From: Oikopleura dioica
Taxonomy: Eukaryota > Animalia > Chordata
Length of the DNA stretch: 64,000 nucleotides
Direction of reading: 5' to 3'
NCBI GenBank assembly: GCA_907165135.1
Contig: OU015567.1
Coordinates: 12,152,001-12,216,000, forward strand
The position numbers and the translations under genes are program-made. Positions within the stretch are counted from its first letter, which is position 1; every line of letters starts with the position of its first letter. This document shows, piece by piece, positions 4,017-45,700 of this stretch. A model generated the notes under the pieces. That model worked only from the letters and a program-made list of their open reading frames with translations. It was not told the DNA's origin and ran no database searches.

Positions 4017-4873
4017 GATGAAGATTTCGATTTTTTCGACCTTGCTTCAGCTCTCGGCCGTGTTTGGACTGAGAGACTTTTCAGAAGATCGACTCTGGGC
4101 GAAATTGGATCCTCAATGGGTTGAGTCGAGGATTTTGGTGACAGACGCAAAGCAAAATTACTTACTCGGCTATTTTACGGGCAAATACGGCTCTACTTCG
4201 GAGAAAAAGCGATCTTCCGGTACATTAATCGTCTAATTCTAGCCAGTAAACTCGTTTTTTTCAGGATATCTAGTGCCTATCCCTGATATCGAGTCCTCCC
4301 GGCGATACAATTCAGTTTTGGGCCGGGGTTGCGCCAGTCCCGGTGCATACAAATTGACTAAGTGGCGACCGAAAGCCAACCGCCGAAGAGTCAGAAGAGG
4401 CCAGTGGATTGCGCTGCTCTACCGTGGCGGATGCACTTTTCAGGAAAAGATTCGACTTGCAACAAAACTCGGAGCAGCGGGGGCGATCATCATTGACTCA
4501 TCCTCTAACAGGTTAAATAAAATCCAAAACTTCTCTGAAAATCATCAAAAAATTCAGGTCGCCAACATTGATGAACACTCTTGGCACTTCCATCGTCTCC
4601 ACCAGCGTTTCCAAAATCACCGGTGATCGTCTTAAACTCTTATTAACCCGCAACCGGCCTATTCACGTCTCCATCTCCGTTGGAAGAATCGAACTCGATC
4701 ATCCCCAAAGGACCCCTTCAAACCAAACCTATTCCATTTATCTAAGCCAAAATGGGTTTTCTATAACTCGTTTTTCAAAAAGTAGCGCTACGCCCTTATC
4801 ATATTCATCATCTTGTGTATTTATTGTCGTCATGTATTCTGTATTCAATCTATTATCATTGTCGCATTTGTAA
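4017..4873 (+). CDS. Signal peptide + PA (protease-associated) domain + hydrophobic C-tail; Goliath/RNF130-like ectodomain, no RING found
   Basis: MKISIFSTLLQLSAVFG signal; WIALLYRGGCTFQEKIRLA..GAAGAIII PA motif; short introns link three ORF frames; stop at 4871-4873. Confidence 0.7.
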
Positions 4874-5187
4874 ATTGTAAAATCACGAGCTAAAATCTGT
4901 ACAAAAAAACTGCTAGCTCTTTGTATATGTAGACTGAATAAATTATCATAAAGAATCGTATCTATTCAAAAACGTATTTAATTTGAGTATGGAAGCAAAA
5001 AGCTTACCTCACCTTACATAAGAGCAGATCGCTCTTATGGAGCATATCTTGAGCACAGGATTAGATTAATTTAGGTTACGTGAGCTTACATAACCAGCTG
5101 GTATAAAATCGAGCTGAGGATTCTTGCGAACACACACATTTAGGAATTGACAATTTGAGAGTCGATGGTAGATTTTTTCTACAACAG

Positions 5188-5629
5188 GGACTCTTCCAGG
5201 CCCTACAGGTGCACAATGTGCGACCGGTGCTACAAGTACATAAGGTACAAATACAGTTTTCTTCTAGGGTTACGGTTAGGATAAGGGTTAGAGTTGGGAT
5301 TCGGCCAAGATTCTTGTAAAAGCCCCTAAAACTCATTCAGCCGCTTTGAAGAGCATTTCGAAGAAACGCACATGATGCAGTACATGCAAATGCGACTCGC
5401 CAGAAAGCGCGAGGTCGAAAATCAGCACCAAGAAAACATAGTGAATCTACTGACCCCTCCAACCACCCCAGAAGACCCAGAAAATTCGAAACGCGAAAAC
5501 ACCGAAAAAAACAAAAACGAACACGGAGAGCTGAAAATCGATGAAACTGTAGAAAAAATGAATATGAACAAAAACGACGATCATAAACCAGTTCGAATTT
5601 CTGTCATCAAAAGGCGTCAAATAAATTGA
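5188..5629 (+). CDS. C2H2 zinc-finger protein (3' exons; start not resolved)
   Basis: Spliced translation RPYRCTMCDRCYKYI-S-RFEEHFEETH gives C-x2-C-x12-H-x4-H and continues into ORF 5372-5629. Confidence 0.7.
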
Positions 5630-8600
5630 TCTTACTGAATTGCCTGAATAATCGAGTTGTTTCAAATTACTGATGACAAAGTCCAACATGATAATTAATA
5701 GTACGGTGAAACCAATGGTATGAAACAAACAGGAGTATTCCCTTGGCACTGGAAAAGCGTATGATGTTCCCTAAATATATCAATTAGCCAAACACGTATT
5801 GTCGATTCGGTATTAAAAACAAAAGGATCTCTCTTATATCAAACAAAACCTCTTAATTTCATCAATTTTTAAGTATTGAGTAATTTGAAATTATTTTGCA
5901 TATAAGAATTATTACCAATGGCTTATCAGGAATCATAAATTTAATTCGAAGACACGCCCTTAACAACAAAAAACAGTCATCCAGTTGTCTTTCGAAATCG
6001 AAAGATTTAGTTATAATTTATAACTTATAAATCGTTTTGCGTCTTTGTTTATTGTCACTTAGTAACTACAGTTTTTTACTGAAGATATTAATTCCTTATT
6101 TTCATAGTCAATAAAAACGAAAGGTCAAGAGGGATGAGAATTTATTTGAAGCATTTCGCTTCCGCTGAAATGACGAATTGGTGGGTTTGGAGTTGTGAAT
6201 TTGACATTTTGGATGCGACACCGTTTTAACGTTGGAGCAGTCTTTGTTTAATTGAGCCCCACCACGATGAATTAGATTTCCACCTAACGTGCCAGCTTCT
6301 CCGCTATGATAGAATTTGAAACAAATCCGCTAAAGCGACAAAATACAACCTCAAAAGACATGAAATTCTAAGTACCAGACGGCGAATGCTTATTCTAGTT
6401 CTTGGGCTTTAATTTTTGCGCTCTCTTATTAGCGCGGCTTTTTCAAAACAAAGCCGCGAATCGGCTTCCTAAAATTAGCTTTTCAATCTATTTTAAAATA
6501 CTGTTTCTTCAAATGAGCCGCCACTAGGATTTTCAGCAAAGATCTTTCAAACCCTGACTCAGATTTTCTTCACAGGAAACCGAGCCCTGATCGAAATGAC
6601 AGTACCACGTGACCAAAATTTTCGAAGATGAGATTTCTTTTTGAATACGATCGTATAATTGCCCCTTTGTTGATCACTTTCTGGCTTGGATAGAATGCGA
6701 AAGTATACCCCCTGTACGTAATTGTCAGATTCCCCCGGCGCAGGCGGATGAAATTCAGCAATGCGGCCTGTCTTCTAAAAAATAGAAAATGTCCGCTTAT
6801 TTTCCTTCTGCAGCTGATCCCGCTCTTTTACGCGCGGCCGATGTCTCCCAGGCTTGAATTATGTCAGCAGGCGCGTGTGACACTTCGCTCTGATGTGAAA
6901 ATTGCCCTTGTGCTTTTACTAATGGTATCGAGCCAGCGAAAAGCACCGCCGAAATGAATTTTCGCCAAACGCCACGCCTCGGCAAATGTTTAGAAAATTA
7001 TCCGCAAACGACACTGACTTTCTGGAGCAAATTATGATCACAGCTCATCTTTTCAATGTCGATTTATTAAAAGAATCATCCGCAATAAATTTTAAATAGC
7101 CCATTTTGTTTAAAAAAGCACAATTTTTAGACCATGTTTATTTTCTTATTTTTTTAATCGCATTACCTAACATGGATTAAGCTTACAGTAATTTGAACGT
7201 TAGTAGAACGCCCGTCACTTACGATTTAGGCGATAAGGGTTCTCCTGCTCTTCCGCTGCTGCACTCAAGGTTTAGACTACACTTCCCGGCGCTTATCGCT
7301 CTTACAAAACGATCAAATTGTTGTTTTCGCTCCTCGCCTAGGCCTGTTATTTTAAGTGGCGTGTACCCTACCTTAGAATGATTTTTTGACGCTTTAGAAA
7401 ACATTCGAAAAAATCTGTAAATAAGAATTTTCGAAAAGACTATCATTAGCTTCTTTAAAAATGTGTCTTTTTTCGAGTATTGGTGCAAAGGCTCAATAAA
7501 TTTCTTCAAAAATATATCAAATTTGAAGTTCAAAAACTGGAATTTCGAGGAAAATTCTAAGATTTGCTAGAATTCTATAAGTCCTGTAAGAGAAGAAAGA
7601 GGGCTTCTATTATTTTAAAGGACCTTTTGAACGCTTCTTCTTTCTATTTTTCTTTCCAGAAGAGATTATTTGCTTTGATGATGGCATGATGATCTGATCC
7701 TTCGGGCCGTTCGTGCTGAGTCTACCAGTTTAAAGAAATAAAAAGGTCGCTTTGATCTGGATTATCCTTCGGCGTGGTTGGACGTGGTCCCTTGAAAACA
7801 AAGCTTGAGCGCACGCGACTACATCCAAAATATAAAAATATTCAATTCGAGCAAGTGAAGGATAAGTTATGCAAAGAAACGCAATACCCGGACGGATTTC
7901 ACCTCGCGCAGAGGGTTTTCCAATCATTTGAAACTGTAGTTGTCGAATCAATATTCTAGGTTTTGGCCAGAAAAAACGCGAGTTACTGTGGCAATCCTGG
8001 ATTGTCTACCCCCATAGTTTTGCCCGCCATAACTGTAAAATTTATAAGTAAGCTAAATTTCTTTCCGTGGAACTTGAAATTTGCTTTACAAATATTTTCC
8101 CAGAGAGAGGTTCCACCAGATTTTTAGCGAGCATAAAAACAGATTGAATTAGTAAATCAAATCTATCTACCTCGCTGAGAAATTCACAACTGTACTAGCA
8201 GCAGGCATATAATTTAAGAGAAGCTGCAAAAATAAGAAAAATCCAGATTTTATCAAGATTTCCAAATTTAATAAAAAGCTTCTTTGGAGTTCAATTGTAA
8301 ATGTGTTTTGAGGCTCCGACGAGTATTTTTGCCCGGATGCGGTTGTTAGCCGCGATTCCGGGGAAGATTTTGTGACTCAAGGCTAATTCTGAACGGGTTG
8401 TATGGAACAGGGATAAAATGCAGGAAGGGGGAAGCTTTAACTGTTTTTGTGTTTTTGTCTCTGGGTTTAGTATTTTTCGGTTGTTGGACAAGATGTTACG
8501 ACATGCTAAAACGCTTCCCCAGCTGGGAGATAGCGAAGAGTTGGAGAAATTGATAAGCCGAAGAGGGACCGAACGATTAGATGTTGGAAGACTCAAGAAA

Positions 8601-16597: not shown

Positions 16598-19500
16598 ATG
16601 GCGGGTGGTTTCTTTGAAACGCTTGGCTCTCTGCAAGAGTCGCCGTTTGCAGACTACATGTGGGTCCTGATTCTCGGCTTTATCATTGCCTTTTTCTTGG
16701 CGTTCTCTGTTGGTGCGAATGATGTGGCGAATCCGTTTGGAACTTCTGTTGGATCTGGTGCTTTAACGCTTCTTCAAGGACTTGGTTTGATTTTAACCCA
16801 TTGACGCACGTCGACCAAAAAGTACAAAATGAGTCATTGGAATATTCATTTGCTCCCCCAAGGAATGCAGTGGAAATTTCGAGTCTATGCATATCCGTTG
16901 GCCGATTATCCGGCATAAATATAGACGCTACGGAAATTAAGGGCTCTTGAATTTGTTGAGTTTCGTAGGCTGCGTGGATTCCTTCTAAACAAAACCCCAA
17001 TGACAGTATGCATCGCCGCCACGTTTATGGAGTCACTGGGTGCCTTAACTTTAGGTGCGCTAGTAACAGTAAGAGAAAATGCTTTAATCGTATTCAGGCG
17101 GCGCTGTCTCGGACACTATCCGTAAAAAGATAGTGAACCCCGACCTCTACAACGAAACTATTCCTCAGGAATGGGCAAACAACATTTTTATGCAGAGAGC
17201 TTTAACCATTTACGCAAATTATATAACCGTACTCATCTTATGCTAAGGTTACTAATCAATGACACGAAGGTAGGTTAAGTACACACCCACCTTCTCAAAA
17301 TTTTGTATCATCATAGTAGACAAATAAAAAAATAACGAGGGTCATGAACTAATCATCAACGATTTACAGCTCCCGGTTCGCACAGGTTGAAACCTGTGCA
17401 AAAAATAGTTTTTCTTGCCCCAAAAAAGTTCATGATTGGACAAGCATGCGCGATGTTAGGAGCCGCTTCTTGGCAAATTCTCGCTTCTGTTCTGAAAATG
17501 CCTGTATCTGGAACTCACTCGATCGTCGGAGCTGTTTTAGGAAAGCGTTTAAAATATGAGACAAGTTTCTGAAATGCGGATAATTACAGTTGTGATAAAC
17601 GTGAACAATAAGGTTTCGCCCTTGTTTCGCGCAAAGGGCAAGGCATCTTTTGGACGACAATCTTCAAAATTGTACTTTCGTGGTTCATCTCGCCCATTTT
17701 GGCTGGCATTTCCGCTGTGGTTCTCTATGTTGGTCTCAAATTCCTCATCCTTTCGAGAGGCACGGGTTGTTCAATTCTGTGGCGAGCGGGGGCATTTCAA
17801 GCTGGCTAAAAATTTAAAAATTCGGCTTAATTCTGAACTAAGGGTCTTCCCTCCTTATCTTTGAACAACCAATGTTTCAGAAAATAAGACCGAGAGAGCC
17901 TTAATTCTCTTGCCATTTTTCTACGCTTTCGTGATATTGCTCAATGTGTTTTCGGTTCTGTTCACCGGCAGCAAGAGTATACTTCAAAACACGCTTCCTG
18001 TTTTGACCAAATATTATTCAGTCTATCAATTGGAAGTTCTAAAGACGTGGCACATGCTTCTCATATCGCTCGGCGCCGCGATGGTTGTTTTGATCGTCTT
18101 TTGGATCTTCATAACGCCCAAACAGCGGAAACAGATTCAGAAAATGAGGGAGGGTCCGTAAATCATTAATTGACTGATTGCAAACAGTGCTCGTATTTAG
18201 GAACGATCGAGGCGAAGGAAGGATGCCTGGATAAGCTGGAGAAGAAACTGGGCTGGGATGCAGAGACCAGGAAACAGAAACGATTAGGAAATGGTTTCTA
18301 ATTGAGCATGTAAATACACAATCATGAATTAAGGGAAGTTCCTTTTAGATAACTTTAGGGGTCCTTTTTGGGGTTTTATACTGATCGCCACTCATTGATC
18401 AATTTATATTATGGCTGCGAGACAACGATTTCTGTTCGTGATGAAAGATTACTGGAACATGATTCAAAATTAGAAATGAAAGCTCATGTTTACTAGTAAA
18501 GTTACTGGGGTTTGTAATGCTGAAATTTAGGTTTTAAAACAGCTCACAAATGGTCAAATAAAAAATTAATAATTTACCAATATTTTTTTCGGAAACCTCA
18601 TCACAAGAAAAAGAAGGGTGAGGCCCATTAGGTGTAAATCCCATTAGGTGTAAATACCCATTTAGTGTAATTTTCTAGAAGGTGTAACACACCTAATAGA
18701 TATTTACACCTAATGGGTATTTACACCTAATTGTTCAATATTTTTCAAAATTATTTTGTAAAAAAGGGATCGACACAAGCTGTCACACATTCTCGACGAC
18801 CCCCCAACGAGCATTTTTTTTTGGAAAAATATTTTTTTTTAATTCTTTCTAAATTGCACTCAAGAAACAAAAAACATCTTTTCGAGCAATTTTCGAAGTC
18901 AAAATTTGAAAATCGCGCGCTATCGATGAGTAATCGTGACAAGCTGAAGCGTTTCGTCATTTGCGCTCAATGAATTATCATTTTTCTTTCTTTTTTCAAA
19001 CGAGAAATCTTTCTGCGAAATATGTTTTCTTGCCGACGTTTATTTAGCTGAAGTTTAATCTATTTCCTGCAATTTTTTCTGATAAATTTTTATATTTAAA
19101 ACTAACCCGTAGGACCTTTAATGGTACCTTTTTTGATTACAGATAGATGATCAAATGTATATTCACAAAAGAGAAGAAGAATTGAAGCTTAATGAAAACA
19201 GCCCGGCTGAAAAATGATGAGTCCAGGAGCAGAAGAGAGATGCTACTCCGAATCAAGAGGAAAGTTAATATTCGCAGAAAAAGGAAGACCAGTTCATCAA
19301 ATCGTTGAGAATCTCCCTCGACCGCTGACTCATGAACTTGAGGTAATCTTTTAGAAGGGATTTTTGAAAATAAATTGTAAAATTCTAGCGTCGAACGCGA
19401 AATCCAGGCGGCGCTGATGACCAATTCCTCGAGAGCACGAACGTCTGTCACGAAGAACTTTCCTTCGCGGAAAATGTCGACCTTTTTGGCAAAGTTTTGA

Positions 19501-22500
19501 AGCCGATCCACTCGCTTTCTTGGGACCCGTTCAGCTCGCTTCTGGCGCTGAGTTCGAAGAACGCGACTTTTGTCTAAATCTGGGACTCGGATCGAGAAGA
19601 ACTCGTTCAGCGACAAGTTGGACAAGTTGTGTTGCCTTCGTCGGATTTAGTAACTCGGGAGAGAAACTGGTCGTTTCTGAAAGCGATTCTATCGCCATTT
19701 TTAGGTAAAACTGCGCTCAATTTATGACCAATAAACTGTTCTTTCAGCTGCGTAACCTGGACAAATGAAGGAACCTGGTGCAATTTGGAAGGCCCTGCTT
19801 TGAACGTCTGTTGGTCACATGACGATCAAAAGATCATTTTCGCCATCAAAAACAAGGCAAGTGCTCCGTCCATGTTTACGATTTCTCACCCTCATTTTAG
19901 ATCTTCATCGCGTCTTTCGAAGGAATCATGGGCCCGGACGAAGAAGCTCGCGAAATCGAAGGCTTCGAAGGCGACGTCCTCCAAATGTCCTGGCATAATC
20001 AACGCCTCGCAGTTGCGGTTGAGGGGCTCAGCGATACGCTTTTGTACTCGAAAGTAAATAACTGAATAAATCTCTGTTTCTGATTATGTTTATTTAAGAA
20101 AAAGAAGTACTGGAAAGTAAAATCTTACAGCTGGTTCGCCAAACATCAGGTACCAATCATTAATTCGCCAGTGGATATGCACGCTGCCAAATTTAGTCGT
20201 AAATTTTTGGAGCTCTCCTTGAGTTTTGTTGAATAGTTCTCCAGATTTAGGCACACGATGAAAAATAATCCATACGCCACATTAATGCCGCAGTCCATGT
20301 ATTTTTGTTTTGGGCATTTTTGATATATAGGAGCCCAGTCCTTTTCGTCTTCTTCGAATACTTCAAGAAACACTTAATTAAATTTCCAATTGCGCTTATG
20401 ATACGGTTAATTAATCTAATATTTTTTGAAATTTGCCTTGATAGACATCTCCATAATCTTCGAAATTCAAAGAGTCGTAAATTGTAAATATTTTTTCCTC
20501 TCTATCCGCCTTGACAATTATCCAGTGTCCAACTCGACCAGGGATAAAGACAGGGCAAACAAATCGTTTTATTTCTGATGGATGATAACCAGTACCAGCA
20601 AAATTTTTTCCTTGAAAGACCATTTGTGAGAATTTCGTGTCTTCAAGAATAATATCATTAGTTTGGTGTTGCTGTTGGTAATGTCTCATAATGATGATAA
20701 ACAAGTCCAGAATTTTGTCTTTTGTTTCTGTTCGAAGTTTGTAAAGTGGCAACAGATCTCGGACGCGAACTTCCTCCTTTTCTATTAAATTGACCAGCTG
20801 TCCTTCAGGCCATTTTTGTATATTTTTAGCGATATTTTCTGCTTCAAATGACATCTTGTAGCCATTAAACTTTTCAAACTTGAAAGTTGGAGTTTTGAAC
20901 ATTTTTCTATCAAGCTCGTTTTCGTATTTCATTGCATTTTCAGATTCCTCAAGAAGAATGGAATTGGACGATTCATCGTTGTTTGTTGCTGACTTAACTT
21001 CTGTGTATTCCGCGGCTTCTTCAAGGACATCAATACGACGCTTTTCTTCCTTGATTTCATCTGTTTTCCTCACAAAGGCGCCGCTATGCTCGCCCATTGC
21101 TGGAAGGTTCTCTTCGTTGATTTCATGACCAGGTGAGCCCTTTTTCTTTTTTGCGTTTTCTTCTTTCTTTTCGACCAAATTGAAATTCATTCCAGCGAGA
21201 AAAGTCTCAAACACTGGATTTCTGCGATCCAGGTCACAAAGGAACTTGTCAAGTGCGTCTTTTGAAGAGAGTAATCTTTTTGCCTCGGTCGACGCCCCTT
21301 TTAGATCTTTTGAAGTCGATATTACAAGCTTTTTCAGCTCAGCATGGCTTATTTTTAGAGGCATGGAAGAAGACTGTCGATCCAACTTTCGATAGAATCG
21401 TTGCATAGCGTTAAATTTAACCATCCATGTTGTACCAGTTTTTTGCGTTGTTTTTATTGGCCATTTTCCATCTTCAAGATAGCTCAACTCATCGTTAAAC
21501 GTCGTTTTCTTGCGATTTGTGATCACTTTGCAAAGCTCTTGAACATCAGGCTTAGACTGCAGACCGCGCAAGAGTCGTGCATTTACACTCTCGCTAAATC
21601 TTGGTTCATCGTTGATTTCAAAAGTTAATTGATATTTTAGAAACGAGTCAAGCTGTTGTTGTCGCTGGTCATGAAGCTGATGAGAAGCGCTGCTCAATTC
21701 GAATAAAAATAGAGAGACCGTGGTCGAAATCATGGAGAAAAATTTAGGTAAAAATGATCAAACCAAGCCTGGCGTTATTAGTGCTATCGATTTCCCCAGT
21801 TTTGATCATATTGGATGATTTATCGGCCCATTCACTAGGCTTGAATGTGGCGTCTTCGTTGAAATAGTTCTTGAGGAGGTAGTCGCGATAAGCGATCCAT
21901 CCATTCTTCTTTTTCTTCTTTTCGCCGTCATCAACATCCACCTTTTCTTTCGCGTTTTCGTCATCATCAACATCCACCTCTTTTTTCGCGTTTTCGTCAT
22001 CAACATCCATCGACTCAACAGCATTACCGTCGATTTCAAGATTTTTTTGGCACTCTTCTGTGATGATTTCGATGAAAACAGCCCGAAATTCATCTTGTCC
22101 AACAGGGAAATAAGGCGCAGAATACAGACAATTCCTTATTGATTTTATAAAATGAAATTAACTGACTTTCACAATACTAATCCCCCTTTTAGAAACCCTC
22201 AACGATGATCAATAGATCAGAACAAGAAGCTCAATCAAAAGGAAATGTTGAACATGATCCGTCACGGAGCGAGAAAGATCTTCGCTGGCGAATGCACAGG
22301 AGCTCTCGATGTCAATCTGAACATCGAGGAAGTCCTCAAAGCCGGAGAAAAGAAAAAGCTGAGCAAAACTACAAGTCCTTTATTAAGTCAACCAAGAGCG
22401 CAAACTAGCAACAAAAAAAAAATCAAGTTCATCGATACTATTTGCCAAGGTACGAAAATACGTCAGAATTTGATTTTGTGGACGATTTTTAATTGATTTC

Positions 22501-25500
22501 AAATAATACCCATTCTAAGCGCACAGTTATCAATACACACCTCCAATGAAGACCAAAAGCGCCTGTGTATTCTTCATTTTGAAGCTCAGTCAGAAAAAAT
22601 TCATCTTCCGCAGAAGATTTGCCCGAATGGCAACCGAAACCTCAAGCGAGTCGGAGAGCGGAAACTTATCTACAAATCAGCTGATGCTAAAAGATCAAAG
22701 GTAAAATAGCAAATGTTAGCAATCTCATTTTATAAAACCTTCCTGATGACTTGTGTCCGTTCTTCCTCCCAAGCCTTCAAGAGGCCTTCCTGTCCTGCCC
22801 GGCGTTTCCAGGATTGATACAAGTGGAAGGAACACTTTATATGAATAACGCCGGGCAGGACAGTTTTGTGAGCAGAGATAAAGGATTTCTCCCAGTCACT
22901 GCACACATAGCGAAGATTAGGGAGCCCATTCGTTTGGCTTTTGAAGAATGCCCATAACGCTTCATATGTTTCCGCTTTGTGATCTTTGAGGAGACAAGTC
23001 ATTCGGTCAACGCAATAACCCTTGACAGGTTTTTTAACGCACCGTCGATTTTTGATGATTACCCCGAAAACAAAAGCCCGAATAAGCGACACCAAGCGAC
23101 TTAAATAAAAAAAACCCGACCTTGAATTTGTTCGATTGATCGCGGCAAGGTTCGGTTACCATCACAAGTTGTGGCCACTGTTTTTTGACGGCACTCACGA
23201 CACTCATTATTCCATCTTTTCGAGTTTCATATTTTTTTTCAGATCACGAGCGAACTCACAAACAACCTGTCTCATCTACAATAACAACAACTCAACTGTA
23301 CTCAATAAAGGTAAAAAACTCTTCCTATATTGAGACTTGATGCATATTCACTTCGGCGAGCGTCATGGTCCAAAAAAAACACTATATTGTGGCGCGTGAA
23401 ATCGTTGCTAAGGGAAGGGAGTCGTGAATCCGCCCACCATCGTTGAAACATATATAAGAAGTGGCATTTTGTCGGCACAATTTGTTTTTCCTTGGCAGCG
23501 ACATTTGAGTTTTTAAATCGAAGCGCCGCTTTTTTGGCATTCTTTTTGGCATTTCCACCGAAAATTCGATTTGAAATTTCACTGTCAACGACTTCATCTT
23601 GCAACAATTCAAGCATTTTTCTCGAAGTCCGGGGCTGTGATTCAAGCTCGTTTCGACGGAATCTGTAAACCACATATCTTTTCCAACAATCAATCAGTGC
23701 ATTCAAATGACCACCAAAGCCACAAACTTCAAACGCCACATGAGATTTTCTTGGATCGTAGATTATAAAGTTTTCAACATCGTAAAATTCTTTCGATTTG
23801 TAATCAGAATTTCGTACAAGCACCGATATTTTCGCTTTACAGTTAGATGTTTCCAGATTCTTTCGAACGTGGTGGTTTTGACAGTTGAGATTCATTCTTT
23901 TCCATCCTTTTTAACAGATCTCAAAATGATAATTTTTGATTTCAGCGCACGAAAAAACCGTCACAATTCCAGCATTTTGGCAAGCAACAGTGCCAAAGCG
24001 ATGTCCACAACATGATTTACTCGATTGAGAAGCGTTTTAGGTAAGTTAATGCCCTAAAGATGCATGCCGTATATATTAAAGGGTAAATCATTCTATTTGA
24101 CCTGCTCCTGGATATTTTGCTGCTAGTTCTTTTGGAAGATCTTGAAAATCGTCTTTATTGCGCGGAGTATATGAGAACAATTCATTAGGTCCAAAGCAAA
24201 TAAAGAAAATGAAATTGACCATGCTTGTTGCCAATTGAACTGATATCAACTATTTAGTGCTCTCAAGATTTCAATTTGATGATGAAGAGTTCTCCGCGAA
24301 AGGGTTGCTCATTTCTGACCGAGGCTACTTGGAAGTTTATCCTTACGACAAATTGCAAGGTAATTCAATTATTAATAAAGAGCACTTTTCCTTTGGATCG
24401 GTACTGGTAGAATCATCGATGATTTCTTGAGTTTCAATCATCGTTGGGGGACGTTCAGGCGTAAGCAAGTCTTTGAGCTCAAGTTTAGCTTTTGGCGCTT
24501 TCTTAACCATGTCGCTGACTTCTTTTGTTAATTCCAAATCCTCATTCTTTTCATCATCCTTTTTACGCTTCATTTTTATCTCTAATAATAAGTAGACTCC
24601 TGCAGAAAATCGAGAAGTAAATGTTCAATTTTTATGAAAATATCTGTAGACTTAAGTTCTAGAAGCACTAGAATTCAAATTCATATAGTCAATATAATTG
24701 TATAACAGTGTTTTAAGCAAAACGACAACGCAGCTGCAAATGGATGAAGATCTCAATGAATACGAAAGTACCAGCTCCGAAAGCAGACCTCAACCTCAAA
24801 GATTCGATGGCATATCTTGAGAAATACTACAAGTCCTCCTCAGCAGCTACAGCGATTTCTTTTTTCACAAAGAGCGAGAAACTGACACAGAACTCCCGAC
24901 CACTTCTGCTCACCATGCTTAGTCACAAAGAAAACGACGCGATCGTGATTTAGTGCCTGAAATTGCTCCAATTTGGCTGCGTCACTTCAGAACTACTACG
25001 ACCTTTGTACAGTATTGTGCGCACGTCAAAATGTAAAGATGTCGTTAACGAGTCGATGATTATCCTGTCGCAGCTTAACTCGGAAAAGTCGATTGCAACT
25101 ATTGGCTCGTTAGGATTCATTCATGAGATTTGTCTCTTCATCGAAAAGTACAAATCAGGTACTGTCCTACTTCGTGACGAATTTCCTTCTGTTGTCAATT
25201 ATTTAGAGGGAAGTATTCAAAAACTGTGTAAAGGCATTATGATCGGCTTGTATAAACGAATCAAACGCAGAGCTCGCTTCCAAAGAAAAAGTTCGATGAA
25301 AAAGATTTTGATGGAGCAAGTAAATTCAAGTCCGATGCTTTGGTTCCTGCAGAAGTCGTTTCATTTTATAAAAATAAAGAGGCTTCAAGGACGATATTAT
25401 CAAAGAGCTTCCTTCTTGACCGGTTTTATTGAGAATCTCTTTTATTCGTATTATTTATATTCAGGCAGATCAAGGTTTTTTTTCTTGTTTTTCTTTGTAT

Positions 25501-28422
25501 TTTCTCGTCAGCAGTCGGATTTCGCAGAGTTTTTCGATCGAAAGAAATGAATTCGGCAACAATTTACACCAAATGTCCCAAAACAAAGAATTTTCACCCA
25601 ATAGGTGTAAGTTCCCATTAGGTGTAAATATCCATTAGGTGTGTTACACCTTCTAGAAAATTACACCTAATGGAATTTACACCTAATGGGTATTTACACC
25701 TAATGGGCCCTACTCGAAAAAGAAGAGAAAGAAGCCCTTGAATACTCGGCTGGAATCCCGATGACGGCGTAAGTAGGCCACAGAATGGCAATTTAGTCCC
25801 CCTCAGTAACCTCAGTAGACATTTCTGTTTCTTCTCAGTGACCGACGAAACGAGTCTTCTGGTTCGCTTTCATCACTTGTTTCGAAGATTTCGAACATCT
25901 CCACCGGCAGCAAAACGAGCATCTACGGAGTCGTCAAGAAGAACGACCTGATTCTCGAGGACGACGAAGAAAACGATGAGAGCCTAAACGATGGATCGGA
26001 GGGTGAAGGTGAGAAAAAGTTGCGTTTTACGTTAAACATGGTTCTTGATCAAGTTTTGGGCGATAAAACACAGCTAGCTCAATAGCAACTTTGATCCAAG
26101 AAAATCAACCACTAAAATAACTCGCTTATCAGCCTGAAATTCAAAAAATAACTACCAGATCGCGTAATCGCTTGACAAAATAATTGGATGATTTGCAAAA
26201 ATGAACTAAAAAATTGAACAGCTTGCAATCAGTACGCCAAAATAACCGGTTATAATCAGACGTCGTTCAAAAATTAAAGTACCGTAGACTGTACGGTCCA
26301 TAGAGAAAAGTCATCTTGAATAGACATCGCCTGAACAATTTCTAACCCCTCAAATTGAAGTTCAAAAGCGACCGGTTTGTAATGAACACTCTGACGGTCA
26401 AATAAGCTCTCTCACAAGAAATTATAGGCGCTTTGCCTCGGCACATGCCACAGGAATCTTCTCGCCGAAATTCCACATTATGCACATTCGCAAAAATACC
26501 GGCAGAGCGCTTGTTCTTTCTTCTGAATTCACTTCGCATTCAGTCGAAAAACGCTAAATGTGTTTAACCTATGCTCGGGCGAAAGTGAAATCGGGATTTG
26601 ATTCAACTAACCTCCGGGTTCCCACGCGTGACAGCAGCTCAGTTGCGTGAGGCGACAAATGACTGTAGAAGCTATTTACAATTAACTCTAAGTCTTCTAG
26701 AGATGCGATACATGTTCAGCCACTTACAAGCATTCTCCGCCTGCTTAGACGCATTCGCACACGGCGGCAACGACGTCGGGTAAGCACCACTGTAAATACC
26801 GATTTAAATTTGCTCGTTCGAGAATAAGAACCGGATCAAGACAAAGGGTTCTCACGTTCTCAGTCGCCGGATAAGCTCCAATTGACAAATTTCGCTTTCT
26901 TGAAAGAAATTACACGAGGATTATTTTAACCACTATTTTGTAGGAACTCCATTGGTCCAGTTCTAGCGCTCTGGTCGGCCTTTTCAGCTGGAAATCTTCT
27001 TTTCGGGCAGGGTCATTATTGAAAAACGGGATTATTGAACCTTGCAAAAATTGAGGATGAATATGAGCGAATATTGTGACCCCGAAAAAAGCTGATGCTC
27101 CTGATCCATGGATTATTGCGTACGGTTGTGCTGGCATCGTGTTGGGATTATGGGTGCTCGGGCGACGTGTGATTGAGACTGTTGGAGAAGATATTGCCGA
27201 AATCACCCCTGCAAGGTAAAAACTGCAGTTGCCACTTTTCCCTTGCCGAAATTGCAATGGCTCTAATTTTTAACTCCGGTCGAGCGAGAATCACAAATTA
27301 TTGACACAGGGTTTCATGAAGCCAAACAACCTTCACATTTAAAATCGCGATATGCGCGGCGACCCAATAATTTCGCGAACTTTACGGGCGAATTACACGG
27401 GCACCATCATTCCGAACACGCGCCGACTCCGTTTTTAGAAAAATGACTCGGATCTAAGTAAGCACAAGATTTGAAAAAATGGCTCGACTCAGCAAGTTCC
27501 ATAAATTCCAGAGTCATGACATTTCCATTGACGGAAAAAAGAGGTCCAGTTTTAATTGTACAAAGTTTGTGGGTAGCAATTAATTTCCGTGTGTTGGAAA
27601 TGTAACGTGTAAATTTCGCGTATTGAATTTTCGCCTCTCAAAATGGAAAAACAGCGAAACTGAATCTCTCGTAATCTTCACGTCTTCAGGTGCACTCGGC
27701 GGTACCATACACGGAGTTCACTTTTAGAACTTTGCGCGCCAGACAAAATATTGTTTCTGCACTGACACACATACTTGATAAAGAAATGGCTGAATCTGAC
27801 GTTGTAACCAGGTTTTAGAGGCTTCTCGATCGACATCATGGCCGGGCTGACTGTCTTGTTGGGATCCAACTATGGAATTCCTCTTTCGACAACTCATTGC
27901 AAGGTATAAATTCGGGGCTGCCAGAAAAATTTTAGAGTTTTCGAAAAGCTTTTCTAAAGCTATAATTTTTAAGTTAAGTTAGAGTACAGGCAGAGGTGCT
28001 TTTACTGCGCGAAAATCCTATCTCGCTCTAAAATAAAAGTTTCGTTGGCTTAGCGAACCATTATTATTGCCTGCGTGAAATTTCCAAAAATATTCTAGCA
28101 CTCGCTCGTTTCATTCAAAAGAGATGCAGCATATTTTCTGAATGGAAATCTTTCGCAAGGGCAATTCTAAAGCTCCGGTTTTTATATTTTTCTTAAAATA
28201 AACATGCAACAAAGAAAAGCCCTCCAATTTCGTAATCCTTTCCTCTACCCTTATTTATGTTTAATCAAGGTGGGAGCGGTGGTCGCCGTCTCTTTAATTC
28301 ACAATCGCAATGCAGTTTCATGGAGAACGTTCGGCAACATTGCCTGGGCCTGGATCGTAACACTTCCTGTTTCCGGCGCTATTTCCGCCTTCTTTTACTG
28401 GCTTATCATCAAGTTGCTGTAA
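16598..28422 (+). CDS. SLC20A: SLC20/PiT sodium-phosphate symporter, multi-exon, interrupted by a MULE insertion
   Basis: [16 protein letters not shown] (N-terminal PHO4 signature); [12 protein letters not shown]; [10 protein letters not shown]; GRRVIETVG; [10 protein letters not shown]; [18 protein letters not shown]. All match remembered PiT1/2 motifs. Confidence 0.95.
19390..20056 (+). pseudogene. AAAS: WD40 gene fragment resembling Aladin, inside the MULE
   Basis: [23 protein letters not shown]; [10 protein letters not shown]; [29 protein letters not shown]; [10 protein letters not shown]. In-frame TAA at 19575-19577, one frameshift, intron 19705-19747 retained. The Aladin identity is from memory. 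Confidence 0.55.
20146..22100 (-). CDS. Ulp1/SENP-like (peptidase C48) protease with long charged N-terminal region, carried by the MULE
   Basis: His motif GHW (20522-20530), Asp motif YDSL, and in the next exon [10 protein letters not shown] (Cys 20290-20292), probably joined by a 64-nt GC-AG intron. Confidence 0.8.
22215..22370 (+). pseudogene. ISWI/SNF2H-like fragment (post-helicase region) inside the MULE
   Basis: [35 protein letters not shown] resembles ISWI DQN..KDEMLQMIRHGA..VF..DIDGILERGAKK. A stop lies just upstream; no helicase exons. Confidence 0.55.
22500..24573 (-). pseudogene. Decayed MULE DDE transposase
   Basis: [46 protein letters not shown] (D2 and CxxH motif); [18 protein letters not shown] (D1-like); N-terminal Y.F..C..C.A.I zinc-finger-like part. 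In-frame TAA at 23911-23913 and an apparent frameshift. Confidence 0.8.
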
Positions 28423-39700: not shown

Positions 39701-42700
39701 CTAAAAATCATCATTGAGCAGATCTTCGAGGTTTTGAAGACTCGTGTCGGTCTCCATTTCGGACGTTTCAATCGCCGTCGGAGTTACAGAAATTGAAGAT
39801 TCCATCGATTGATCCCGCTCGTAGTTGGCAATGTCTGCCAGTTCTGATGAGTCGTGAGCTGAAAATTCAATTGAAACATGGGAAACATCAAAAGCTTCAC
39901 CTTTTTGCTTGTGATTTCCCTTTGGATCGAGCTGATTAGCAATTTGCATATGCTTGTTGCCAAGATATTTCTGCCCTAAATGATGGTATGCCTTTGCCAT
40001 GGTGTAATTGACAAGGGCCAGTTTGGGGTGAATCTTGTCAAGATGTATCAACTCGTTGAGCGCTTTCTGATAGTCGCCGAGGTTATAATACATGTTCGCT
40101 TTCATGAAGAGCGCGTTCGCTTGTGTTGGATCAAACTGCAGCGCCTAGAAACAAACGTACTATATGTAGGGATATCGCACAAATTTTCAGGTACCCAAAA
40201 AAGGGTCCATGCCAATTTTTAGATTGATGATTTAGTAGAACTTTGTACGAGGAGTTCAATGCTGCCAAAATCATCCCATAATAATGAGTCATTTTCGTAA
40301 AAATGACGTTCAAAGAGCTCATTTTTGGATCAGTACGAGAACTCTTATTCAGTAACGATTTTATATTTTTTCCTTATAGATATTGAGCTGAGAAATCTAA
40401 ATCTGCAAAAAAATTCACTGACGCACCTCGCGTTTTGAAAATATGAATTTTTAAAGTTTTCCGAGGTGAATTCTAAGCGGGGTTGCGTCATTTTGGAGGC
40501 GGCCGCCAGGGGGCGCGCGCGCTGCATGGCCAAGCTAGCCCGACTCACATTCTTTTCTCTTCACAATTTTATGCTATTTTTCATAAAATTGCATATTTCT
40601 GGAGCTTTTAAGATGATTTTTTTTCGATGAATAAGGATTTTAATTGATAATAAAAATATTTCATAAAAAATGAGTTTCTAATTATAAATTATAGCTTAAT
40701 TAGATAGTATTTTTCAATTTTTCACAGGTTAAGAATGAGTTTTATCATAAAACTTTTATGAAAATGAACCTAAAGTAACTCTCACGCAAAAGAAATTCCC
40801 CGCAACAAATTACGGCGTCGACGCTGATTGCTTGCGAATTCCGATTTCTTACATAAAATCAACTGACAGCAAGAGCCGAAAACCGAAGGTGCCGACAAAG
40901 CTTCACCTAACGAGTCGAATACTTTTTGTGAGTGAATGAAGGTCTTTACTGGAAGCTCGGTTTTTCCTACTATAAAGTCGAGTAAGACTACTTTCGGAAG
41001 CTATTTTAGAACATTTTCTATCGAATCAGTGGAGAAATCGTGCTACGTTTGATAGTGAGCTCGGAGATAAATGTAATTCCTGGAGCATTTGGTTTGTGAA
41101 TAACGAGCAGTATGGAGTCGATACTGTCAGTTCCTCCTTCAGACTTGAGCGTCAAAGTGTAAACGATTCCAAAAACCTTTGATTTCTACAATTTCTCCGA
41201 CATCATTTTTGACCGCTTAGGTAACTTTGGTACACATCTTTTTCGGCGATTTTTTTTTCGTCAGATGCTTGACCATTTTCTTTTGCAAATCGGACATTTT
41301 TGGATTCAACTGGAGAAAGCCCTGGCCGGGTGTTGGCGCTTTAGCCGCGGCGAGTGCGGCTATGTTGGCTTTTTGCGGCTATTCGGGCTTGTTTATCGGA
41401 GATGGAAGAACTTTGTTCTGGAGCGGGATTCTTTTGGGATTCGGCAGTAGGATCCGGGCATTTGAAATTTGCGAGGGCCGTTTCAGCCCCGTTCCTTCAT
41501 TTTTGAATTTAAGGGGCTTGACGGCCCTTCGGGCCGTTTCAGCCCCGTTCCTTCATTTTTGAATTTAAGGGCTTGACGGCCCTTCGGGCCGTTTCAGCCC
41601 CGTTCCTTCATTTTTGAATTTAAGGGCTTGACGGCCCTTCGGGCCGTTTCAGCCCCGTTCCTTCATTTTTGAATTTAAGGGCTTGACGGCCCTTCGGGCC
41701 GTTTCAGCCCCGTTCCTTCATTTTTGAATTTAAGGGGCTTGACGGCCCTTCGGGCCGTTTCAGCCCCGTTCCTTCATTTTTGAATTTAAGGGGCTTGACG
41801 GCCCTTCGGGCCGTTTCAGCCCCGTTCCTTCATTTTTGAATTTAAGGGGCTTGACGGCCCTTCGGGCCGTTTCAGCCCCGTTCCTTCATTTTTGAATTTA
41901 AGGGGCTTGACGGCCCTTCGGGCCGTTTCAGCCCCGTTCCTTCATTTTTGAATTTAAGGGGCTTGACGGCCCTTCGGGCCGTTTCAGCCCCGTTCCTTCA
42001 TTTTTGAATTTAAGGGGCTTGACGGCCCTTCGGGCCGTTTCAGCCCCGTTCCTTCATTTTTGAATTTAAGGGGCTTGACGGCCCTTCGGGCCGTTTCAGC
42101 CCCGTTCCTTCATTTTTGAATTTAAGGGGCTTGACGGCCCTTCGGGCCGTTTCAGCCCCGTTCCTTCATTTTTGAATTTAAGGGCTTGACGGCCCTTCGG
42201 GCCGTTTCAGCCCCGTTCCTTCATTTTTGAATTTAAGGGGCTTGACGGCCCTTCGGGCCGTTTCAGCCCCGTTCCTTCATTTTTGAATTTAAGGGCTTGA
42301 CGGCCCTTCGGGCCGTTTCAGCCCCGTTCCTTCATTTTTGAATTTAAGGGCTTGACGGCCCTTCGGGCCGTTTCAGCCCCGTTCCTTCATTTTTGAATTT
42401 AAGGGCTTGACGGCCCTTCGGGCCGTTTCAGCCCCGTTCCTTCATTTTGAATTTAAGGGGCTTGACGGCCCTTCGGGCCGTTTCAGCCCCGTTCCTTCAT
42501 TTTTGAATTTAAGGGCTTGACGGCCCTTCGGGCCGTTTCAGCCCCGTTCCTTCATTTTTGAATTTAAGGGGCTTGACGGCCCTTCGGGCCGTTTCAGCCC
42601 CGTTCCTTCATTTTTGAATTTAAGGGCTTGACGGCCCTTCGGGCCGTTTCAGCCCCGTTCCTTCATTTTTGAATTTAAGGGGCTTGACGGCCCTTCGGGC

Positions 42701-45700
42701 CGTTTCAGCCCCGTTCCTTCATTTTTGAATTTAAGGGGCTTGACGGCCCTTCGGGCCGTTTCAGCCCCGTTCCTTCATTTTTGAATTTAAGGGGCTTGAC
42801 GGCCCTTCGGGCCGTTTCAGCCCCGTTCCTTCATTTTTGAATTTAAGGGGCTTGACGGCCCTTCGGGCCGTTTCAGCCCCGTTCCTTCATTTTTGAATTT
42901 AAGGGGCTTGACGGCCCTTCGGGCCGTTTCAGCCCCGTTCCTTCATTTTTGAATTTAAGGGCTTGACGGCCCTTCGGGCCGTTTCAGCCCCGTTCCTTCA
43001 TTTTTGAATTTAAGGGGCTTGACGGCCCTTCGGGCCGTTTCAGCCCCGTTCCTTCATTTTTGAATTTAAGGGGCTTGACGGCCCTTCGGGCCGTTTCAGC
43101 CCCGTTCCTTCATTTTGAATTTAAGGGGCTTGACGGCCCTTCGGGCCGTTTCAGCCCCGTTCCTTCATTTTTGAATTTAAGGGCTTGACGGCCCTTCGGG
43201 CCGTTTCAGCCCCGTTCCTTCATTTTTGAATTTAAGGGGCTTGACGGCCCTTCGGGCCGTTTCAGCCCCGTTCCTTCATTTTTGAATTTAAGGGGCTTGA
43301 CGGCCCTTCGGGCCGTTTCAGCCCCGTTCCTTCATTTTTGAATTTAAGGGCTTGACGGCCCTTCGGGCCGTTTCAGCCCCGTTCCTTCATTTTTGAATTT
43401 AAGGGGCTTGACGGCCCTTCGGGCCGTTTCAGCCCCGTTCCTTCATTTTTGAATTTAAGGGCTTGACGGCCCTTCGGGCCGTTTCAGCCCCGTTCCTTCA
43501 TTTTGAATTTAAGGGCTTGACGGCCCTTCGGGCCGTTTCAGCCCCGTTCCTTCATTTTTGAATTTAAGGGGCTTGACGGCCCTTCGGGCCGTTTCAGCCC
43601 CGTTCCTTCATTTTTGAATTTAAGGGCTTGACGGCCCTTCGGGCCGTTTCAGCCCCGTTCCTTCATTTTTGAATTTAAGGGGCTTGACGGCCCTTCGGGC
43701 CGTTTCAGCCCCGTTCCTTCATTTTTGAATTTAAGGGGCTTGACGGCCCTTCGGGCCGTTTCAGCCCCGTTCCTTCATTTTTGAATTTAAGGGGCTTGAC
43801 GGCCCTTCGGGCCGTTTCAGCCCCGTTCCTTCATTTTTGAATTTAAGGGCTTGACGGCCCTTCGGGCCGTTTCAGCCCCGTTCCTTCATTTTTGAATTTA
43901 AGGGGCTTGACGGCCCTTCGGGCCGTTTCAGCCCCGTTCCTTCATTTTTGAATTTAAGGGCTTGACGGCCCTTCGGGCCGTTTCAGCCCCGTTCCTTCAT
44001 TTTTGAATTTAAGGGCTTGACGGCCCTTCGGGCCGTTTCAGCCCCGTTCCTTCATTTTTGAATTTAAGGGGCTTGACGGCCCTTCGGGCCGTTTCAGCCC
44101 CGTTCCTTCATTTTTGAATTTAAGGGGCTTGACGGCCCTTCGGGCCGTTTCAGCCCCGTTCCTTCATTTTTGAATTTAAGGGCTTGACGGCCCTTCGGGC
44201 CGTTTCAGCCCCGTTCCTTCATTTTTGAATTTAAGGGGCTTGACGGCCCTTCGGGCCGTTTCAGCCCCGTTCCTTCATTTTTGAATTTAAGGGGCTTGAC
44301 GGCCCTTCGGGCCGTTTCAGCCCCGTTCCTTCATTTTTGAATTTAAGGGGCTTGACGGCCCTTCGGGCCGTTTCAGCCCCGTTCCTTCATTTTGAATTTA
44401 AGGGCTTGACGGCCCTTCGGGCCGTTTCAGCCCCGTTCCTTCATTTTTGAATTTAAGGGCTTGACGGCCCTTCGGGCCGTTTCAGCCCCGTTCCTTCATT
44501 TTTGAATTTAAGGGCTTGACGGCCCTTCGGGCCGTTTCAGCCCCGTTCCTTCATTTTTGAATTTAAGGGGCTTGACGGCCCTTCGGGCCGTTTCAGCCCC
44601 GTTCCTTCATTTTTGAATTTAAGGGGCTTGACGGCCCTTCGGGCCGTTTCAGCCCCGTTCCTTCATTTTTGAATTTAAGGGGCTTGACGGCCCTTCGGGC
44701 CGTTTCAGCCCCGTTCCTTCATTTTTGAATTTAAGGGGCTTGACGGCCCTTCGGGCCGTTTCAGCCCCGTTCCTTCATTTTTGAATTTAAGGGGCTTGAC
44801 GGCCCTTCGGGCCGTTTCAGCCCCGTTCCTTCATTTTTGAATTTAAGGGGCTTGACGGCCCTTCGGGCCGTTTCAGCCCCGTTCCTTCATTTTGAATTTA
44901 AGGGGCTTGACGGCCCTTCGGGCCGTTTCAGCCCCGTTCCTTCATTTTTGAATTTAAGGGGCTTGACGGCCCTTCGGGCCGTTTCAGCCCCGTTCCTTCA
45001 TTTTTGAATTTAAGGGGCTTGACGGCCCTTCGGGCCGTTTCAGCCCCGTTCCTTCATTTTTGAATTTAAGGGGCTTGACGGCCCTTCGGGCCGTTTCAGC
45101 CCCGTTCCTTCATTTTTGAATTTAAGGGCTTGACGGCCCTTCGGGCCGTTTCAGCCCCGTTCCTTCATTTTTGAATTTAAGGGGCTTGACGGCCCTTCGG
45201 GCCGTTTCAGCCCCGTTCCTTCATTTTTGAATTTAAGGGGCTTGACGGCCCTTCGGGCCGTTTCAGCCCCGTTCCTTCATTTTTGAATTTAAGGGGCTTG
45301 ACGGCCCTTCGGGCCGTTTCAGCCCCGTTCCTTCATTTTTGAATTTAAGGGGCTTGACAAAGGCTTGGAACTCTGAATTGATCAATCTCAGTTTTGTCCC
45401 CAACCCCGCCCACACCCATTGTTTTAAAAATTCATATTATTTAAGCTCTTTTCTTTTGTTATGGTTTTGTTCTACCCGCCGATCTAGAAGGATAGATGCA
45501 ATATTTTTCGCTTCTTCGGAGCAAAATGAGCTGCGTCTCGTGTTATCAAAGTCTCAGAGACAGAAAATCTTGAGATTTACTGGATGTTAGATTTTCTGGA
45601 AAAGGCGATTTTCTGGAACTTCTTGAAAATCGTATATTCCAGAAAATCTAACTTCCAGAAAATCGCCTCTCTCGGCGCCAATCGGCCAACGACTCCGCCA

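Follow-up and report, generated by a model that had tools for sequence, protein, structure and literature searches.

Locus architecture

The window analysed here is a 64,000-nucleotide stretch of the genome of the chordate Oikopleura dioica (OKI2018_I69; contig OU015567.1, positions 12,152,001 to 12,216,000, forward strand). Lying at positions 18616–25715 is a Mutator-like element (MULE) of 7,100 bp, bounded by terminal inverted repeats (TIRs) and flanked by a target-site duplication (TSD). Its minus strand holds a predicted gene in which a MULE transposase is joined to a Ulp1/SENP-like protease domain, and its plus strand holds fragments of several host genes, referred to here as cargo (Table 1).

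The same 9-bp sequence, GAAAAAGAA, stands on both sides of the element. The TIRs (18616 to ~18745 and ~25586 to 25715) are ~120–130 bp long and can be aligned over ~117 nt with ~89–90% identity. An original prediction, made from the letters of the window, had named a 9-bp TSD and long TIRs, and both are borne out. Arrayed at each end is a 15–16-bp unit, CCATTAGGTGTAAAT, present about six times per end and in both orientations, so that each end can fold back on itself. The window contains 13 matches to this unit, against a chance expectation of 1.65 and with 0 of 100 shuffles reaching 13; 12 of them lie within the two element ends.

Copies in the genome

The genome examined comprises 64.3 Mb in 19 contigs of a Nanopore-based assembly, in which C4 is chromosome 1 (chr1) and C3 the Y-specific region (YSR) (PMC8008620); we infer that C5 is chromosome 2 (chr2) and C1 the pseudo-autosomal scaffold. 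The TIR tip occurs in it exactly eight times, pairing into four elements. Three of these measure 7.1 kb, namely the window copy and two copies on C4 (C4a and C4b), and the fourth, on C1, measures 8.9 kb and holds 1,821 bp (~1.8 kb) of extra cargo. The interior common to all four is 99.5–99.9% identical and the homology ends exactly at the TIR tips, beyond which the TSDs differ: GAAAAAGAA, AAACGTATC, AGCTCTGAGA and GATTATCTT, with lengths of 9, 9, 10 and 9 bp. A search by TIR motif, as suggested with the original prediction, thus leads to three other loci that share the whole 7.1 kb, each with a TSD of its own. The three 7.1-kb copies are 0–1 substitutions apart, and their substitution divergence to the 8.9-kb copy is 0.31%. 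The element moves as a unit bounded by its TIRs and by TSDs of 9–10 bp at four independent insertions, a cut-and-paste-type mobility with the hallmarks of MULEs, and its short form spread very recently.

Genome-wide, no solo TIRs or MITE-like derivatives (miniature inverted-repeat transposable elements, MITEs) were found; the only traces are on the Y-specific scaffold, where a related repeat unit survives in two remnant arrays. A metagenome scan with the 18-nt TIR tip gave 10 matches, all attributable to chance, none with a second repeat unit and some in apparently ordinary coding sequence.

The predicted transposase gene

Running along the minus strand is a chain of open frames that matches three sister loci piecewise, in the same order and with 25–45% amino-acid identity. 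The sister loci lie in the YSR at 1.605–1.611 Mb (C3rel, composed of L018 and L023) and at 0.671 Mb, and on chr1 at 11.753–11.760 Mb (L019). A six-exon model was derived from the sequence with the sister proteins as guides; searches were run exon by exon, and frame compatibility was settled by arithmetic. Exact removal of each predicted intron yields a gapless alignment to a sister protein, for example NKFK/GYCVDRM with NKLL/GFSAPRA (slashes mark predicted splice boundaries throughout). In the 8.9-kb copy all six predicted exons are open, with a summed length of 2,760 nt, or 920 codons. A Pfam scan of exon 1, the Cys/His-rich N-terminal part, gave no match.

The window copy and C4a share a single defect, a run of eight adenines (A8) at 23232–23239 where the 8.9-kb copy has nine (A9) and reads through, and C4b carries three further single-base indels beyond A8. 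The original description of a broken transposase therefore stands for this one frameshift in the window copy, whereas most of the apparent breaks are small predicted introns. The accompanying proposal, that the window copy is mobilisable in trans, fits the A8 frameshift and the intact TIRs and TSD: the copy is probably defective and nevertheless mobilisable.

The CxxH motif (CSFHLYQS) is located in the open reading frame (ORF) 22730–23095(-), which matches the Pfam family MULE (PF10551) with E=1.5e-5 at 25.8 bits, slightly short of the 27.6-bit cut-off. The corresponding exon of the YSR sister matches PF10551 with 25.0 bits and Transposase_mut (PF00872) with 22.6 bits, the latter above the 21-bit cut-off. 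The motifs D(G), SD(W), C-x2-H and NN-x2-E follow one another in the expected order, in agreement with the DDE/CxxH transposase of the original prediction. TSDs, TIRs and motif order are concordant, and the placement in the Mutator superfamily, also proposed there, appears secure in practice with 9–10-bp TSDs and long TIRs, even for a copy formally below the Pfam threshold.

A HMMER search with a 448-aa ORF of the element against 1.84 billion representatives returned three matches, which were two O. dioica sister elements and one anonymous 1.3-kb Logan contig, and a search of public assemblies for exact occurrences of the 440-aa ORF gave no record. By these sequence comparisons the transposon lineage appears very divergent.

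Inside the predicted 100-nt intron is a 55–59-nt end fragment (23041–23099) of another multicopy repeat, antisense to the transposase. The repeat itself is larger (ACCGATGATTTTTGATGATTGCCCCGAAAAC...TGCCTGGAGGACCCC...) and occurs at at least 25 other loci (for example, L026–L037); only its terminal part is present here.

The Ulp1/SENP-like domain

In the 448-aa ORF at 20414–21757(-), the DDE glutamate motif is followed about 330 residues on by GHW...YDS. Transposase and protease would thus be one polypeptide, as motifs of both lie in this single ORF. A profile built from the His/Asp exon of four elements had SENP2, SENP1 and Ulp1 as its 12 best matches in the Protein Data Bank (PDB), with E=1.4e-3 to 1.2e-2. 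The alignment with SENP2 is colinear over about 105 residues, HW and DS included, with the catalytic His (GHW) and Asp (YDS) aligned. In the next exon, in ORF 20149–20373(-) and at the expected distance from His/Asp, is a Q-x4-C-G motif (KQKYMDCG), whose Q, C and G are invariant with respect to the chr1 sister L019. In a protein language-model search, used as a lead only, Peptidase_C48 clusters came first with a score of 0.89.

The transposase-then-Ulp1 order recurs in the 25–45%-identical sisters in the YSR and on chr1. The profile matches uphold the earlier claim that the element encodes a SUMO-protease-like domain. Of the catalytic triad claimed with it, His and Asp align with SENP2 and the Gln/Cys motif is present, in an exon that has no significant match of its own. 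Treating Ulp1 as a separate piece of cargo is not tenable, as it shares an ORF with the C-terminal part of the transposase and keeps the same order in the sisters; by this evidence, Ulp1 is an old part of the transposon lineage and not recent cargo. The protease may act in deSUMOylation tied to transposition or to escape from silencing, by analogy with its family. Both sisters have a Cys aligned with the protease Asp (FFCS[MT]N), so these copies may lack activity or rely on an altered active site.

A third related family has left a remnant (L020, YSR 667001–677000), with a TIR of similar sequence (GAGTAGGACTAATCTGGTGTAAAT...) and a His/Asp exon of Ulp1 that is 38% identical to that of the window copy. 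Just downstream of this protease exon are long ORFs (5735–8307) whose translations read as resembling retrotransposon reverse transcriptase/RNase H, and the remnant is partly annotated as gene model YSR.g17053.

Host-gene cargo and its donors

Cargo was detected by a DNA-level comparison of the element with the host genome, in which internal segments gave single-locus matches. The window copy contains pieces of at least five host genes and the long copy of seven, with 86–97% DNA identity to the donors, which are conserved host genes according to Pfam. The claim that the element copies host DNA is hence supported by identified donor loci and by the introns that some pieces have kept; the original count of at least two fragments was right in kind and too low in number.

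In the donor of the Aladin fragment, 534 bp absent from the element lie between the two matching blocks, and the donor ORF matches Pfam Beta-prop_Aladin (E=2.8e-36). The ISWI match reaches 656 bp in the 8.9-kb copy, and its donor ORFs match SNF2-rel_dom (E=5e-83) and Helicase_C. Comparison of the internal cargo among copies, another step suggested at the outset, shows that the 1,821 bp peculiar to the long copy consist of this ISWI continuation, about 900 bp of a CDC27-like TPR gene and 363 bp of CFAP20 (86%). The possibility that the extra 1.8 kb is a nested transposon was rejected, the sequence being more cargo, and the short copies are therefore deletion derivatives.

Some pieces hold donor introns, which indicates copying from genomic DNA: the CDC27 piece has the donor's 48-nt intron intact, and the Aladin piece also spans an intron. 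The CDC27-like donor gene itself lies elsewhere in the window (40145–46718, minus strand), where its 48-nt intron now holds an insertion of ~6.5 kb with ends TTAGGG...CCCTA and a flanking CATATAG duplication. The 8.9-kb MULE copy (L009, ~4770–5670) keeps the intron uninterrupted, as a fossil empty site, and the capture therefore predates the ~6.5-kb insertion.

All seven pieces are in sense orientation on the plus strand, and so antisense to the transposase, an arrangement with a chance probability of ~1/128. Of the seven donors, four are situated no more than 0.95 Mb from the window copy, one of them at a distance of 14–21 kb; the binomial probability of this clustering is ~2.5e-5, or ~1e-4 when the four copies are allowed for. 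Such proximity suggests capture from linked or physically close DNA, at a time when the lineage resided at or near the window locus.

Two further observations concern individual pieces. In the short form, the 1,821-bp deletion has made an 83-aa chimeric ORF from ISWI-derived and ZER1-derived sequence (window 22245–22496, plus strand), a case of exon shuffling by cargo rearrangement that is probably meaningless. Two short stretches of the kinase tail match a Y-specific locus (L016, YSR 270692–270833), one of them at 94% against 86% for the chr2 donor; this locus could be another paralogue or the cargo of another element.

Table 1 Features of the element and of one of its donor genes, in window coordinates.
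Feature	Position	Strand	Basis or match
Left TSD copy, GAAAAAGAA	18607–18615	.	identical to 25716–25724
Left TIR, first letters GGGTGAGGCCCATTAGGTGTAAAT; 5 CCATTAGGTGTAAAT units in both orientations, foldback-like shape	18616–18745	+	
Aladin (AAAS-like WD-propeller) fragment, two blocks, with start codon and donor intron	19211–20051	+	~93% to chr1 (C4):3302943-3304326
Predicted exon 6, C-terminal Ulp1-like part, Q..DCG motif, stop codon	20146–20372	-	
Predicted 64-nt GC-AG intron (AG/GCAAAT ... TTAAG/), phase 1	20373–20436	-	sequence reading
Predicted exon 5, one frame: DDE glutamate motif (S-ESVNARLL), linker, Ulp1 His/Asp half (GHW...YDS)	20437–21593	-	
Predicted 175-nt GC-AG intron, phase 2	21594–21768	-	removal gives gapless match to TNNISESGNASLL of sister L019
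Predicted exon 4, acidic repeat, ends IDSTNNA	21769–22134	-	alignment to sisters
Cargo block, 608 nt, read as GA-AG intron (AG/GAA ... ATAAG/), phase 2	22135–22742	-	sequence reading
ISWI/SNF2 fragment	22214–22356	+	97% to chr2 (C5):11268788-11268930
ZER1/ZYG11-like fragment	22385–22458	+	92% to C5:13012660-13012731; donor matches ZER1-like_2nd, E=1e-45
CNH-domain gene locus fragment	22493–22715	+	92% to C1:9820932-9821154; donor-locus ORFs match CNH, E=1e-13
Predicted exon 3, second catalytic Asp (VCSDWEKSF), CxxH motif (CSFHLYQS)	22743–23020	-	Pfam MULE match
Predicted 100-nt GT-AG intron, phase 0, TCAAG direct repeat on either side	23021–23120	-	both sister elements lack this intron
Predicted exon 2, first catalytic Asp (KDGIMSVVS)	23121–23275	-	window copy frameshifted at A8 run 23232–23239
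Predicted 44-nt GT-AG intron, phase 0	23276–23319	-	sequence reading
Predicted exon 1, N-terminal 192 aa from ATG at 23895, Cys/His-rich putative DNA-binding part	23320–23895	-	sister loci, 25–38%
Protein-kinase gene, C-terminal non-kinase part	24759–25368	+	86% to C5:13121725-13122396; adjacent donor ORF matches Pkinase, E=2e-44
Right TIR, reverse complement begins GAGTAGGGCCCATTAGGTGTAAAT	25586–25715	-	
Right TSD copy, GAAAAAGAA	25716–25724	.	9 bp
Donor exon, TPR/CDC27-like gene, outside the element	39768–40166	-	90%-identical copy in cargo of 8.9-kb element
Second donor block, same CDC27-like gene, outside the element	46687–47228	-	93% to cargo of 8.9-kb copy

The cargo block inside the transposase gene

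Two of the cargo pieces lie outside the coding region: the Aladin piece follows the stop codon and the kinase tail precedes the ATG. The remaining cargo is gathered in a single block, 608 nt long in the window copy and 2,429 nt in the 8.9-kb copy, which breaks the transposase frame at a point between the CxxH motif and the DDE glutamate. Five pieces, joined head to tail with junctions of 4–56 bp, make up about 92% of the 2.4-kb block of the long copy. The block (22135–22742 in the window copy) lies between the two copies of an imperfect 9-bp direct repeat, ATCAGGAAG and ATAAGGAAT, and its ends form a 13-nt inverted repeat (TTTTATAAAATGA).

The sisters L019 and C3rel are uninterrupted at this position, and exact removal of the block costs no codon and leaves a gapless match to the sister sequence ELRAVLYSLPYYQL. 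Splicing the block out with any canonical GT-AG pair would break the frame, which is kept only with AG/GAA...AG. GA-AG introns are common in O. dioica, where they outnumber GC-AG introns and have the context AG/GAA (PMC7072748), and the predicted 608-nt intron starts with AG/GAA, matching this consensus (PMC7072748). On the simplest reading of the sequence, insertion of foreign DNA into the gene would have produced a short duplication, and the insert would be tolerated by being spliced out.

The YSR sister has a different block of 2.4 kb, positioned 21 codons upstream, codon-exact and with borders CAG/GAA...TAATAG/. It is filled with pieces that match at least ten dispersed loci with 86–97% identity. 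A similar long gap is present in the transposase gene of the chr1 sister L019. The mosaics in the gaps of L018/L023 and L019 match many dispersed loci at 75–97% identity, with single-locus and multicopy matches mixed.

Such blocks lead to a broader proposal, that an autonomous MULE-Ulp1 clade routinely captures nearby host DNA and stores it, antisense, in new spliceable introns of its own transposase gene, capture and intron gain being one event. We regard this as a tentative idea with somewhat less than an even chance of being correct. If true, the element would stay autonomous while acting as a Pack-MULE, and the pattern in two divergent sisters would be a property of the lineage and not an accident.

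Insertion site

The window copy is inserted in a plus-strand PHO4/SLC20 phosphate-transporter gene, between two PHO4 halves (16.6–17.6 kb and 26.6–28.4 kb). Around the element, this host gene spans window 16598–18161 and 26598–28422 (+). It has landed at or next to a small variable-loop exon rich in Lys/Glu, whose closing GTAAGT donor lies at about 25770.

Proposed mechanism and alternative explanations

Taken as a whole, the locus probably represents a very recently mobile, low-copy MULE with a transposase–Ulp1 gene and captured host DNA. The long copy would encode a fusion of ~919 aa in which a Cys/His region at the N-terminus is followed by a MULE DDE/CxxH transposase and, at the C-terminus, by a Ulp1/SENP-like cysteine-protease domain. 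Its transposase may bind the 15–16-bp subterminal repeats, about six per end, and cut and paste the element. Cargo pieces would be taken up by template switching or by gap filling during repair or replication, mostly from loci near the window insertion site, and the cargo block would be removed as a GA-AG intron, allowing cargo and coding capacity to coexist. As candidate for the autonomous master we propose the 8.9-kb copy, found on the pseudo-autosomal scaffold. The short form, represented by the window copy and its two twins on chr1, is a deletion derivative that lacks 1,821 bp of the cargo block and one A of exon 2. It may have arisen by interrupted gap repair, and its copies probably move by transposase supplied in trans. 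Splicing, activity and autonomy of the gene are accordingly to be read as predictions.

Several results weigh against this interpretation. The splice sites of the five predicted introns were read from sequence alone, and three of the five have non-GT donors. The A8/A9 difference and the C4b indels could be errors, as they fall in homopolymers of a Nanopore-based assembly. For the protease, the Ulp1 ORFs of the window copy, scanned individually, had no Pfam match, and Peptidase_C48 (PF02902) was reached by the sisters only, at 13.8–16.7 bits against a cut-off of 20.7 bits; the Cys-bearing exon, searched against the PDB alone or with its sister, and against Pfam, had no relevant match; and AlphaFold2, run on the four-sequence alignment of the protease exon, gave an unusable model (pLDDT 44.5). 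The PF10551 match of this copy is below its cut-off, and the search of 1.84 billion representatives gave no significant relative outside O. dioica except the anonymous Logan contig. A metagenome scan with the reconstructed empty site had 0 matches, leaving the window insertion without an empty site.

Alternatively, the cargo block may have destroyed the transposase gene, leaving none of the four copies autonomous; the family would then be moved, or have been moved, by an autonomous partner absent from the assembly or unrecognised in it. The lack of any canonical GT-AG path over the block that keeps the frame would fit this explanation, as would the presence of only eight matching termini in the genome. 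We nevertheless consider it unlikely: no codon was lost when the block was inserted, and the block is bordered as expected of the AG/GAA...AG intron type of the species; a second block with these properties is found elsewhere in the gene of an independent sister; amplification has left every exon open; and the genome holds no other element with these TIRs that could supply transposase. The Ulp1-like domain might instead be a recently captured fragment of a host SENP gene, given that the element demonstrably takes up host DNA and that the Ulp1 of the plant element KI-MULE has been discussed as a duplicated protease (PMC8277862). This is very improbable for a domain that lies in frame with the transposase in one ORF and, unlike all cargo, in sense orientation to it; no host locus is similar to it at the DNA level, its only relatives at the protein level are transposon sisters, and sisters of 25–45% identity share the architecture.

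The original prediction had itself pointed to a further scenario, in which two independent MITEs enclose ordinary host DNA. Each end does look MITE-like, being a hairpin of subrepeats, but the inner edges lack the terminal GGGCC...tip, no solo ends exist, and the full 7.1 kb recurs at three unlinked loci with 99.5–99.9% identity and different outer TSDs. Four whole copies with distinct TSDs effectively exclude this scenario, to which we assign practically no probability. The transposase–Ulp1 MULE with captured cargo thus remains our preferred explanation of the locus.

Comparison with known systems

In the O. dioica assembly paper, 44% of repeats are unclassified (PMC8008620), and a literature search for Mutator elements in larvaceans found no paper. 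A tunicate can now be added to the animals with Ulp1-fused Mutator transposases, and the family is a candidate for an active DNA transposon in a species that serves as a model but is without transgenesis tools. The mechanism of gene capture by MULEs is unsettled, and the present family is a compact animal case, with four copies, seven or more donors and both an ancestral and a deleted form in a 64-Mb chordate genome. Donors within 1 Mb of one copy bear on template switching in cis or by three-dimensional proximity. The cargo block may be tolerated through the permissive O. dioica spliceosome, and the cargo also serves as a dated fossil of a host intron before the entry of another transposon.

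Association of a Mutator transposase with a C48 Ulp1 domain is shared with the KI-MULE of Arabidopsis, the CUMULE of melon and Mutator families of hydra and lancelet, to which we liken the O. dioica element by description. Bao et al. 2010 aligned Ulp1 domains in Mutator transposases and listed the hydra and lancelet families (PMC2836005); with these cases on record, the fusion is not new for animals, although the animal families in that paper are described without cargo. Muta1 of Aedes aegypti is a functional animal MULE, a likeness that goes as far as the descriptions drawn on here (PMC5225508, PMC5499845). Introners (Huff et al. 2016, cited in PMC13326754), as outlined in that citing source, resemble the cargo block in that precise removal of the insert, along with a single copy of a short flanking direct repeat, restores an intact coding sequence; the O. 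dioica insert differs in being a mosaic of host-gene pieces in a transposase gene and not a multicopy element, and in that its splicing is predicted.

By strict definition, a Pack-MULE has no transposase gene. The O. dioica element has one, open in the long copy and with one frameshift in the window copy, and ‘Pack-MULE-like’ is therefore the right wording. Shared with the Pack-MULEs of rice and other plants are MULE TIRs, TSDs of 9–10 bp, the joining of several intron-bearing fragments of unlinked host genes, and multicopy spread with distinct TSDs. Plant Pack-MULEs are without a transposase gene, whereas the O. dioica element keeps its transposase–Ulp1 gene and carries its cargo largely in an interruption of that gene; its host is a chordate, and its donors are enriched near the element, in contrast to rice, where donors are described as mostly unlinked (PMC8277862).

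A survey of 100 animal reference genomes found no Pack-MULE (PMC8277862), and gene capture by MULEs has accordingly been treated as essentially a plant phenomenon. An animal parallel is Ssk-FB4 of Drosophila (Tan et al. 2021, PMC8277862), regarded as a Pack-MULE by its authors (PMC8277862): it too is a TIR element with 9–10-bp TSDs, long subrepeat-rich TIRs, a captured gene and multiple copies. Ssk-FB4 is non-autonomous, its transposase is not known and it carries one gene (PMC8277862), whereas the O. dioica family combines seven or more gene pieces with a transposase.

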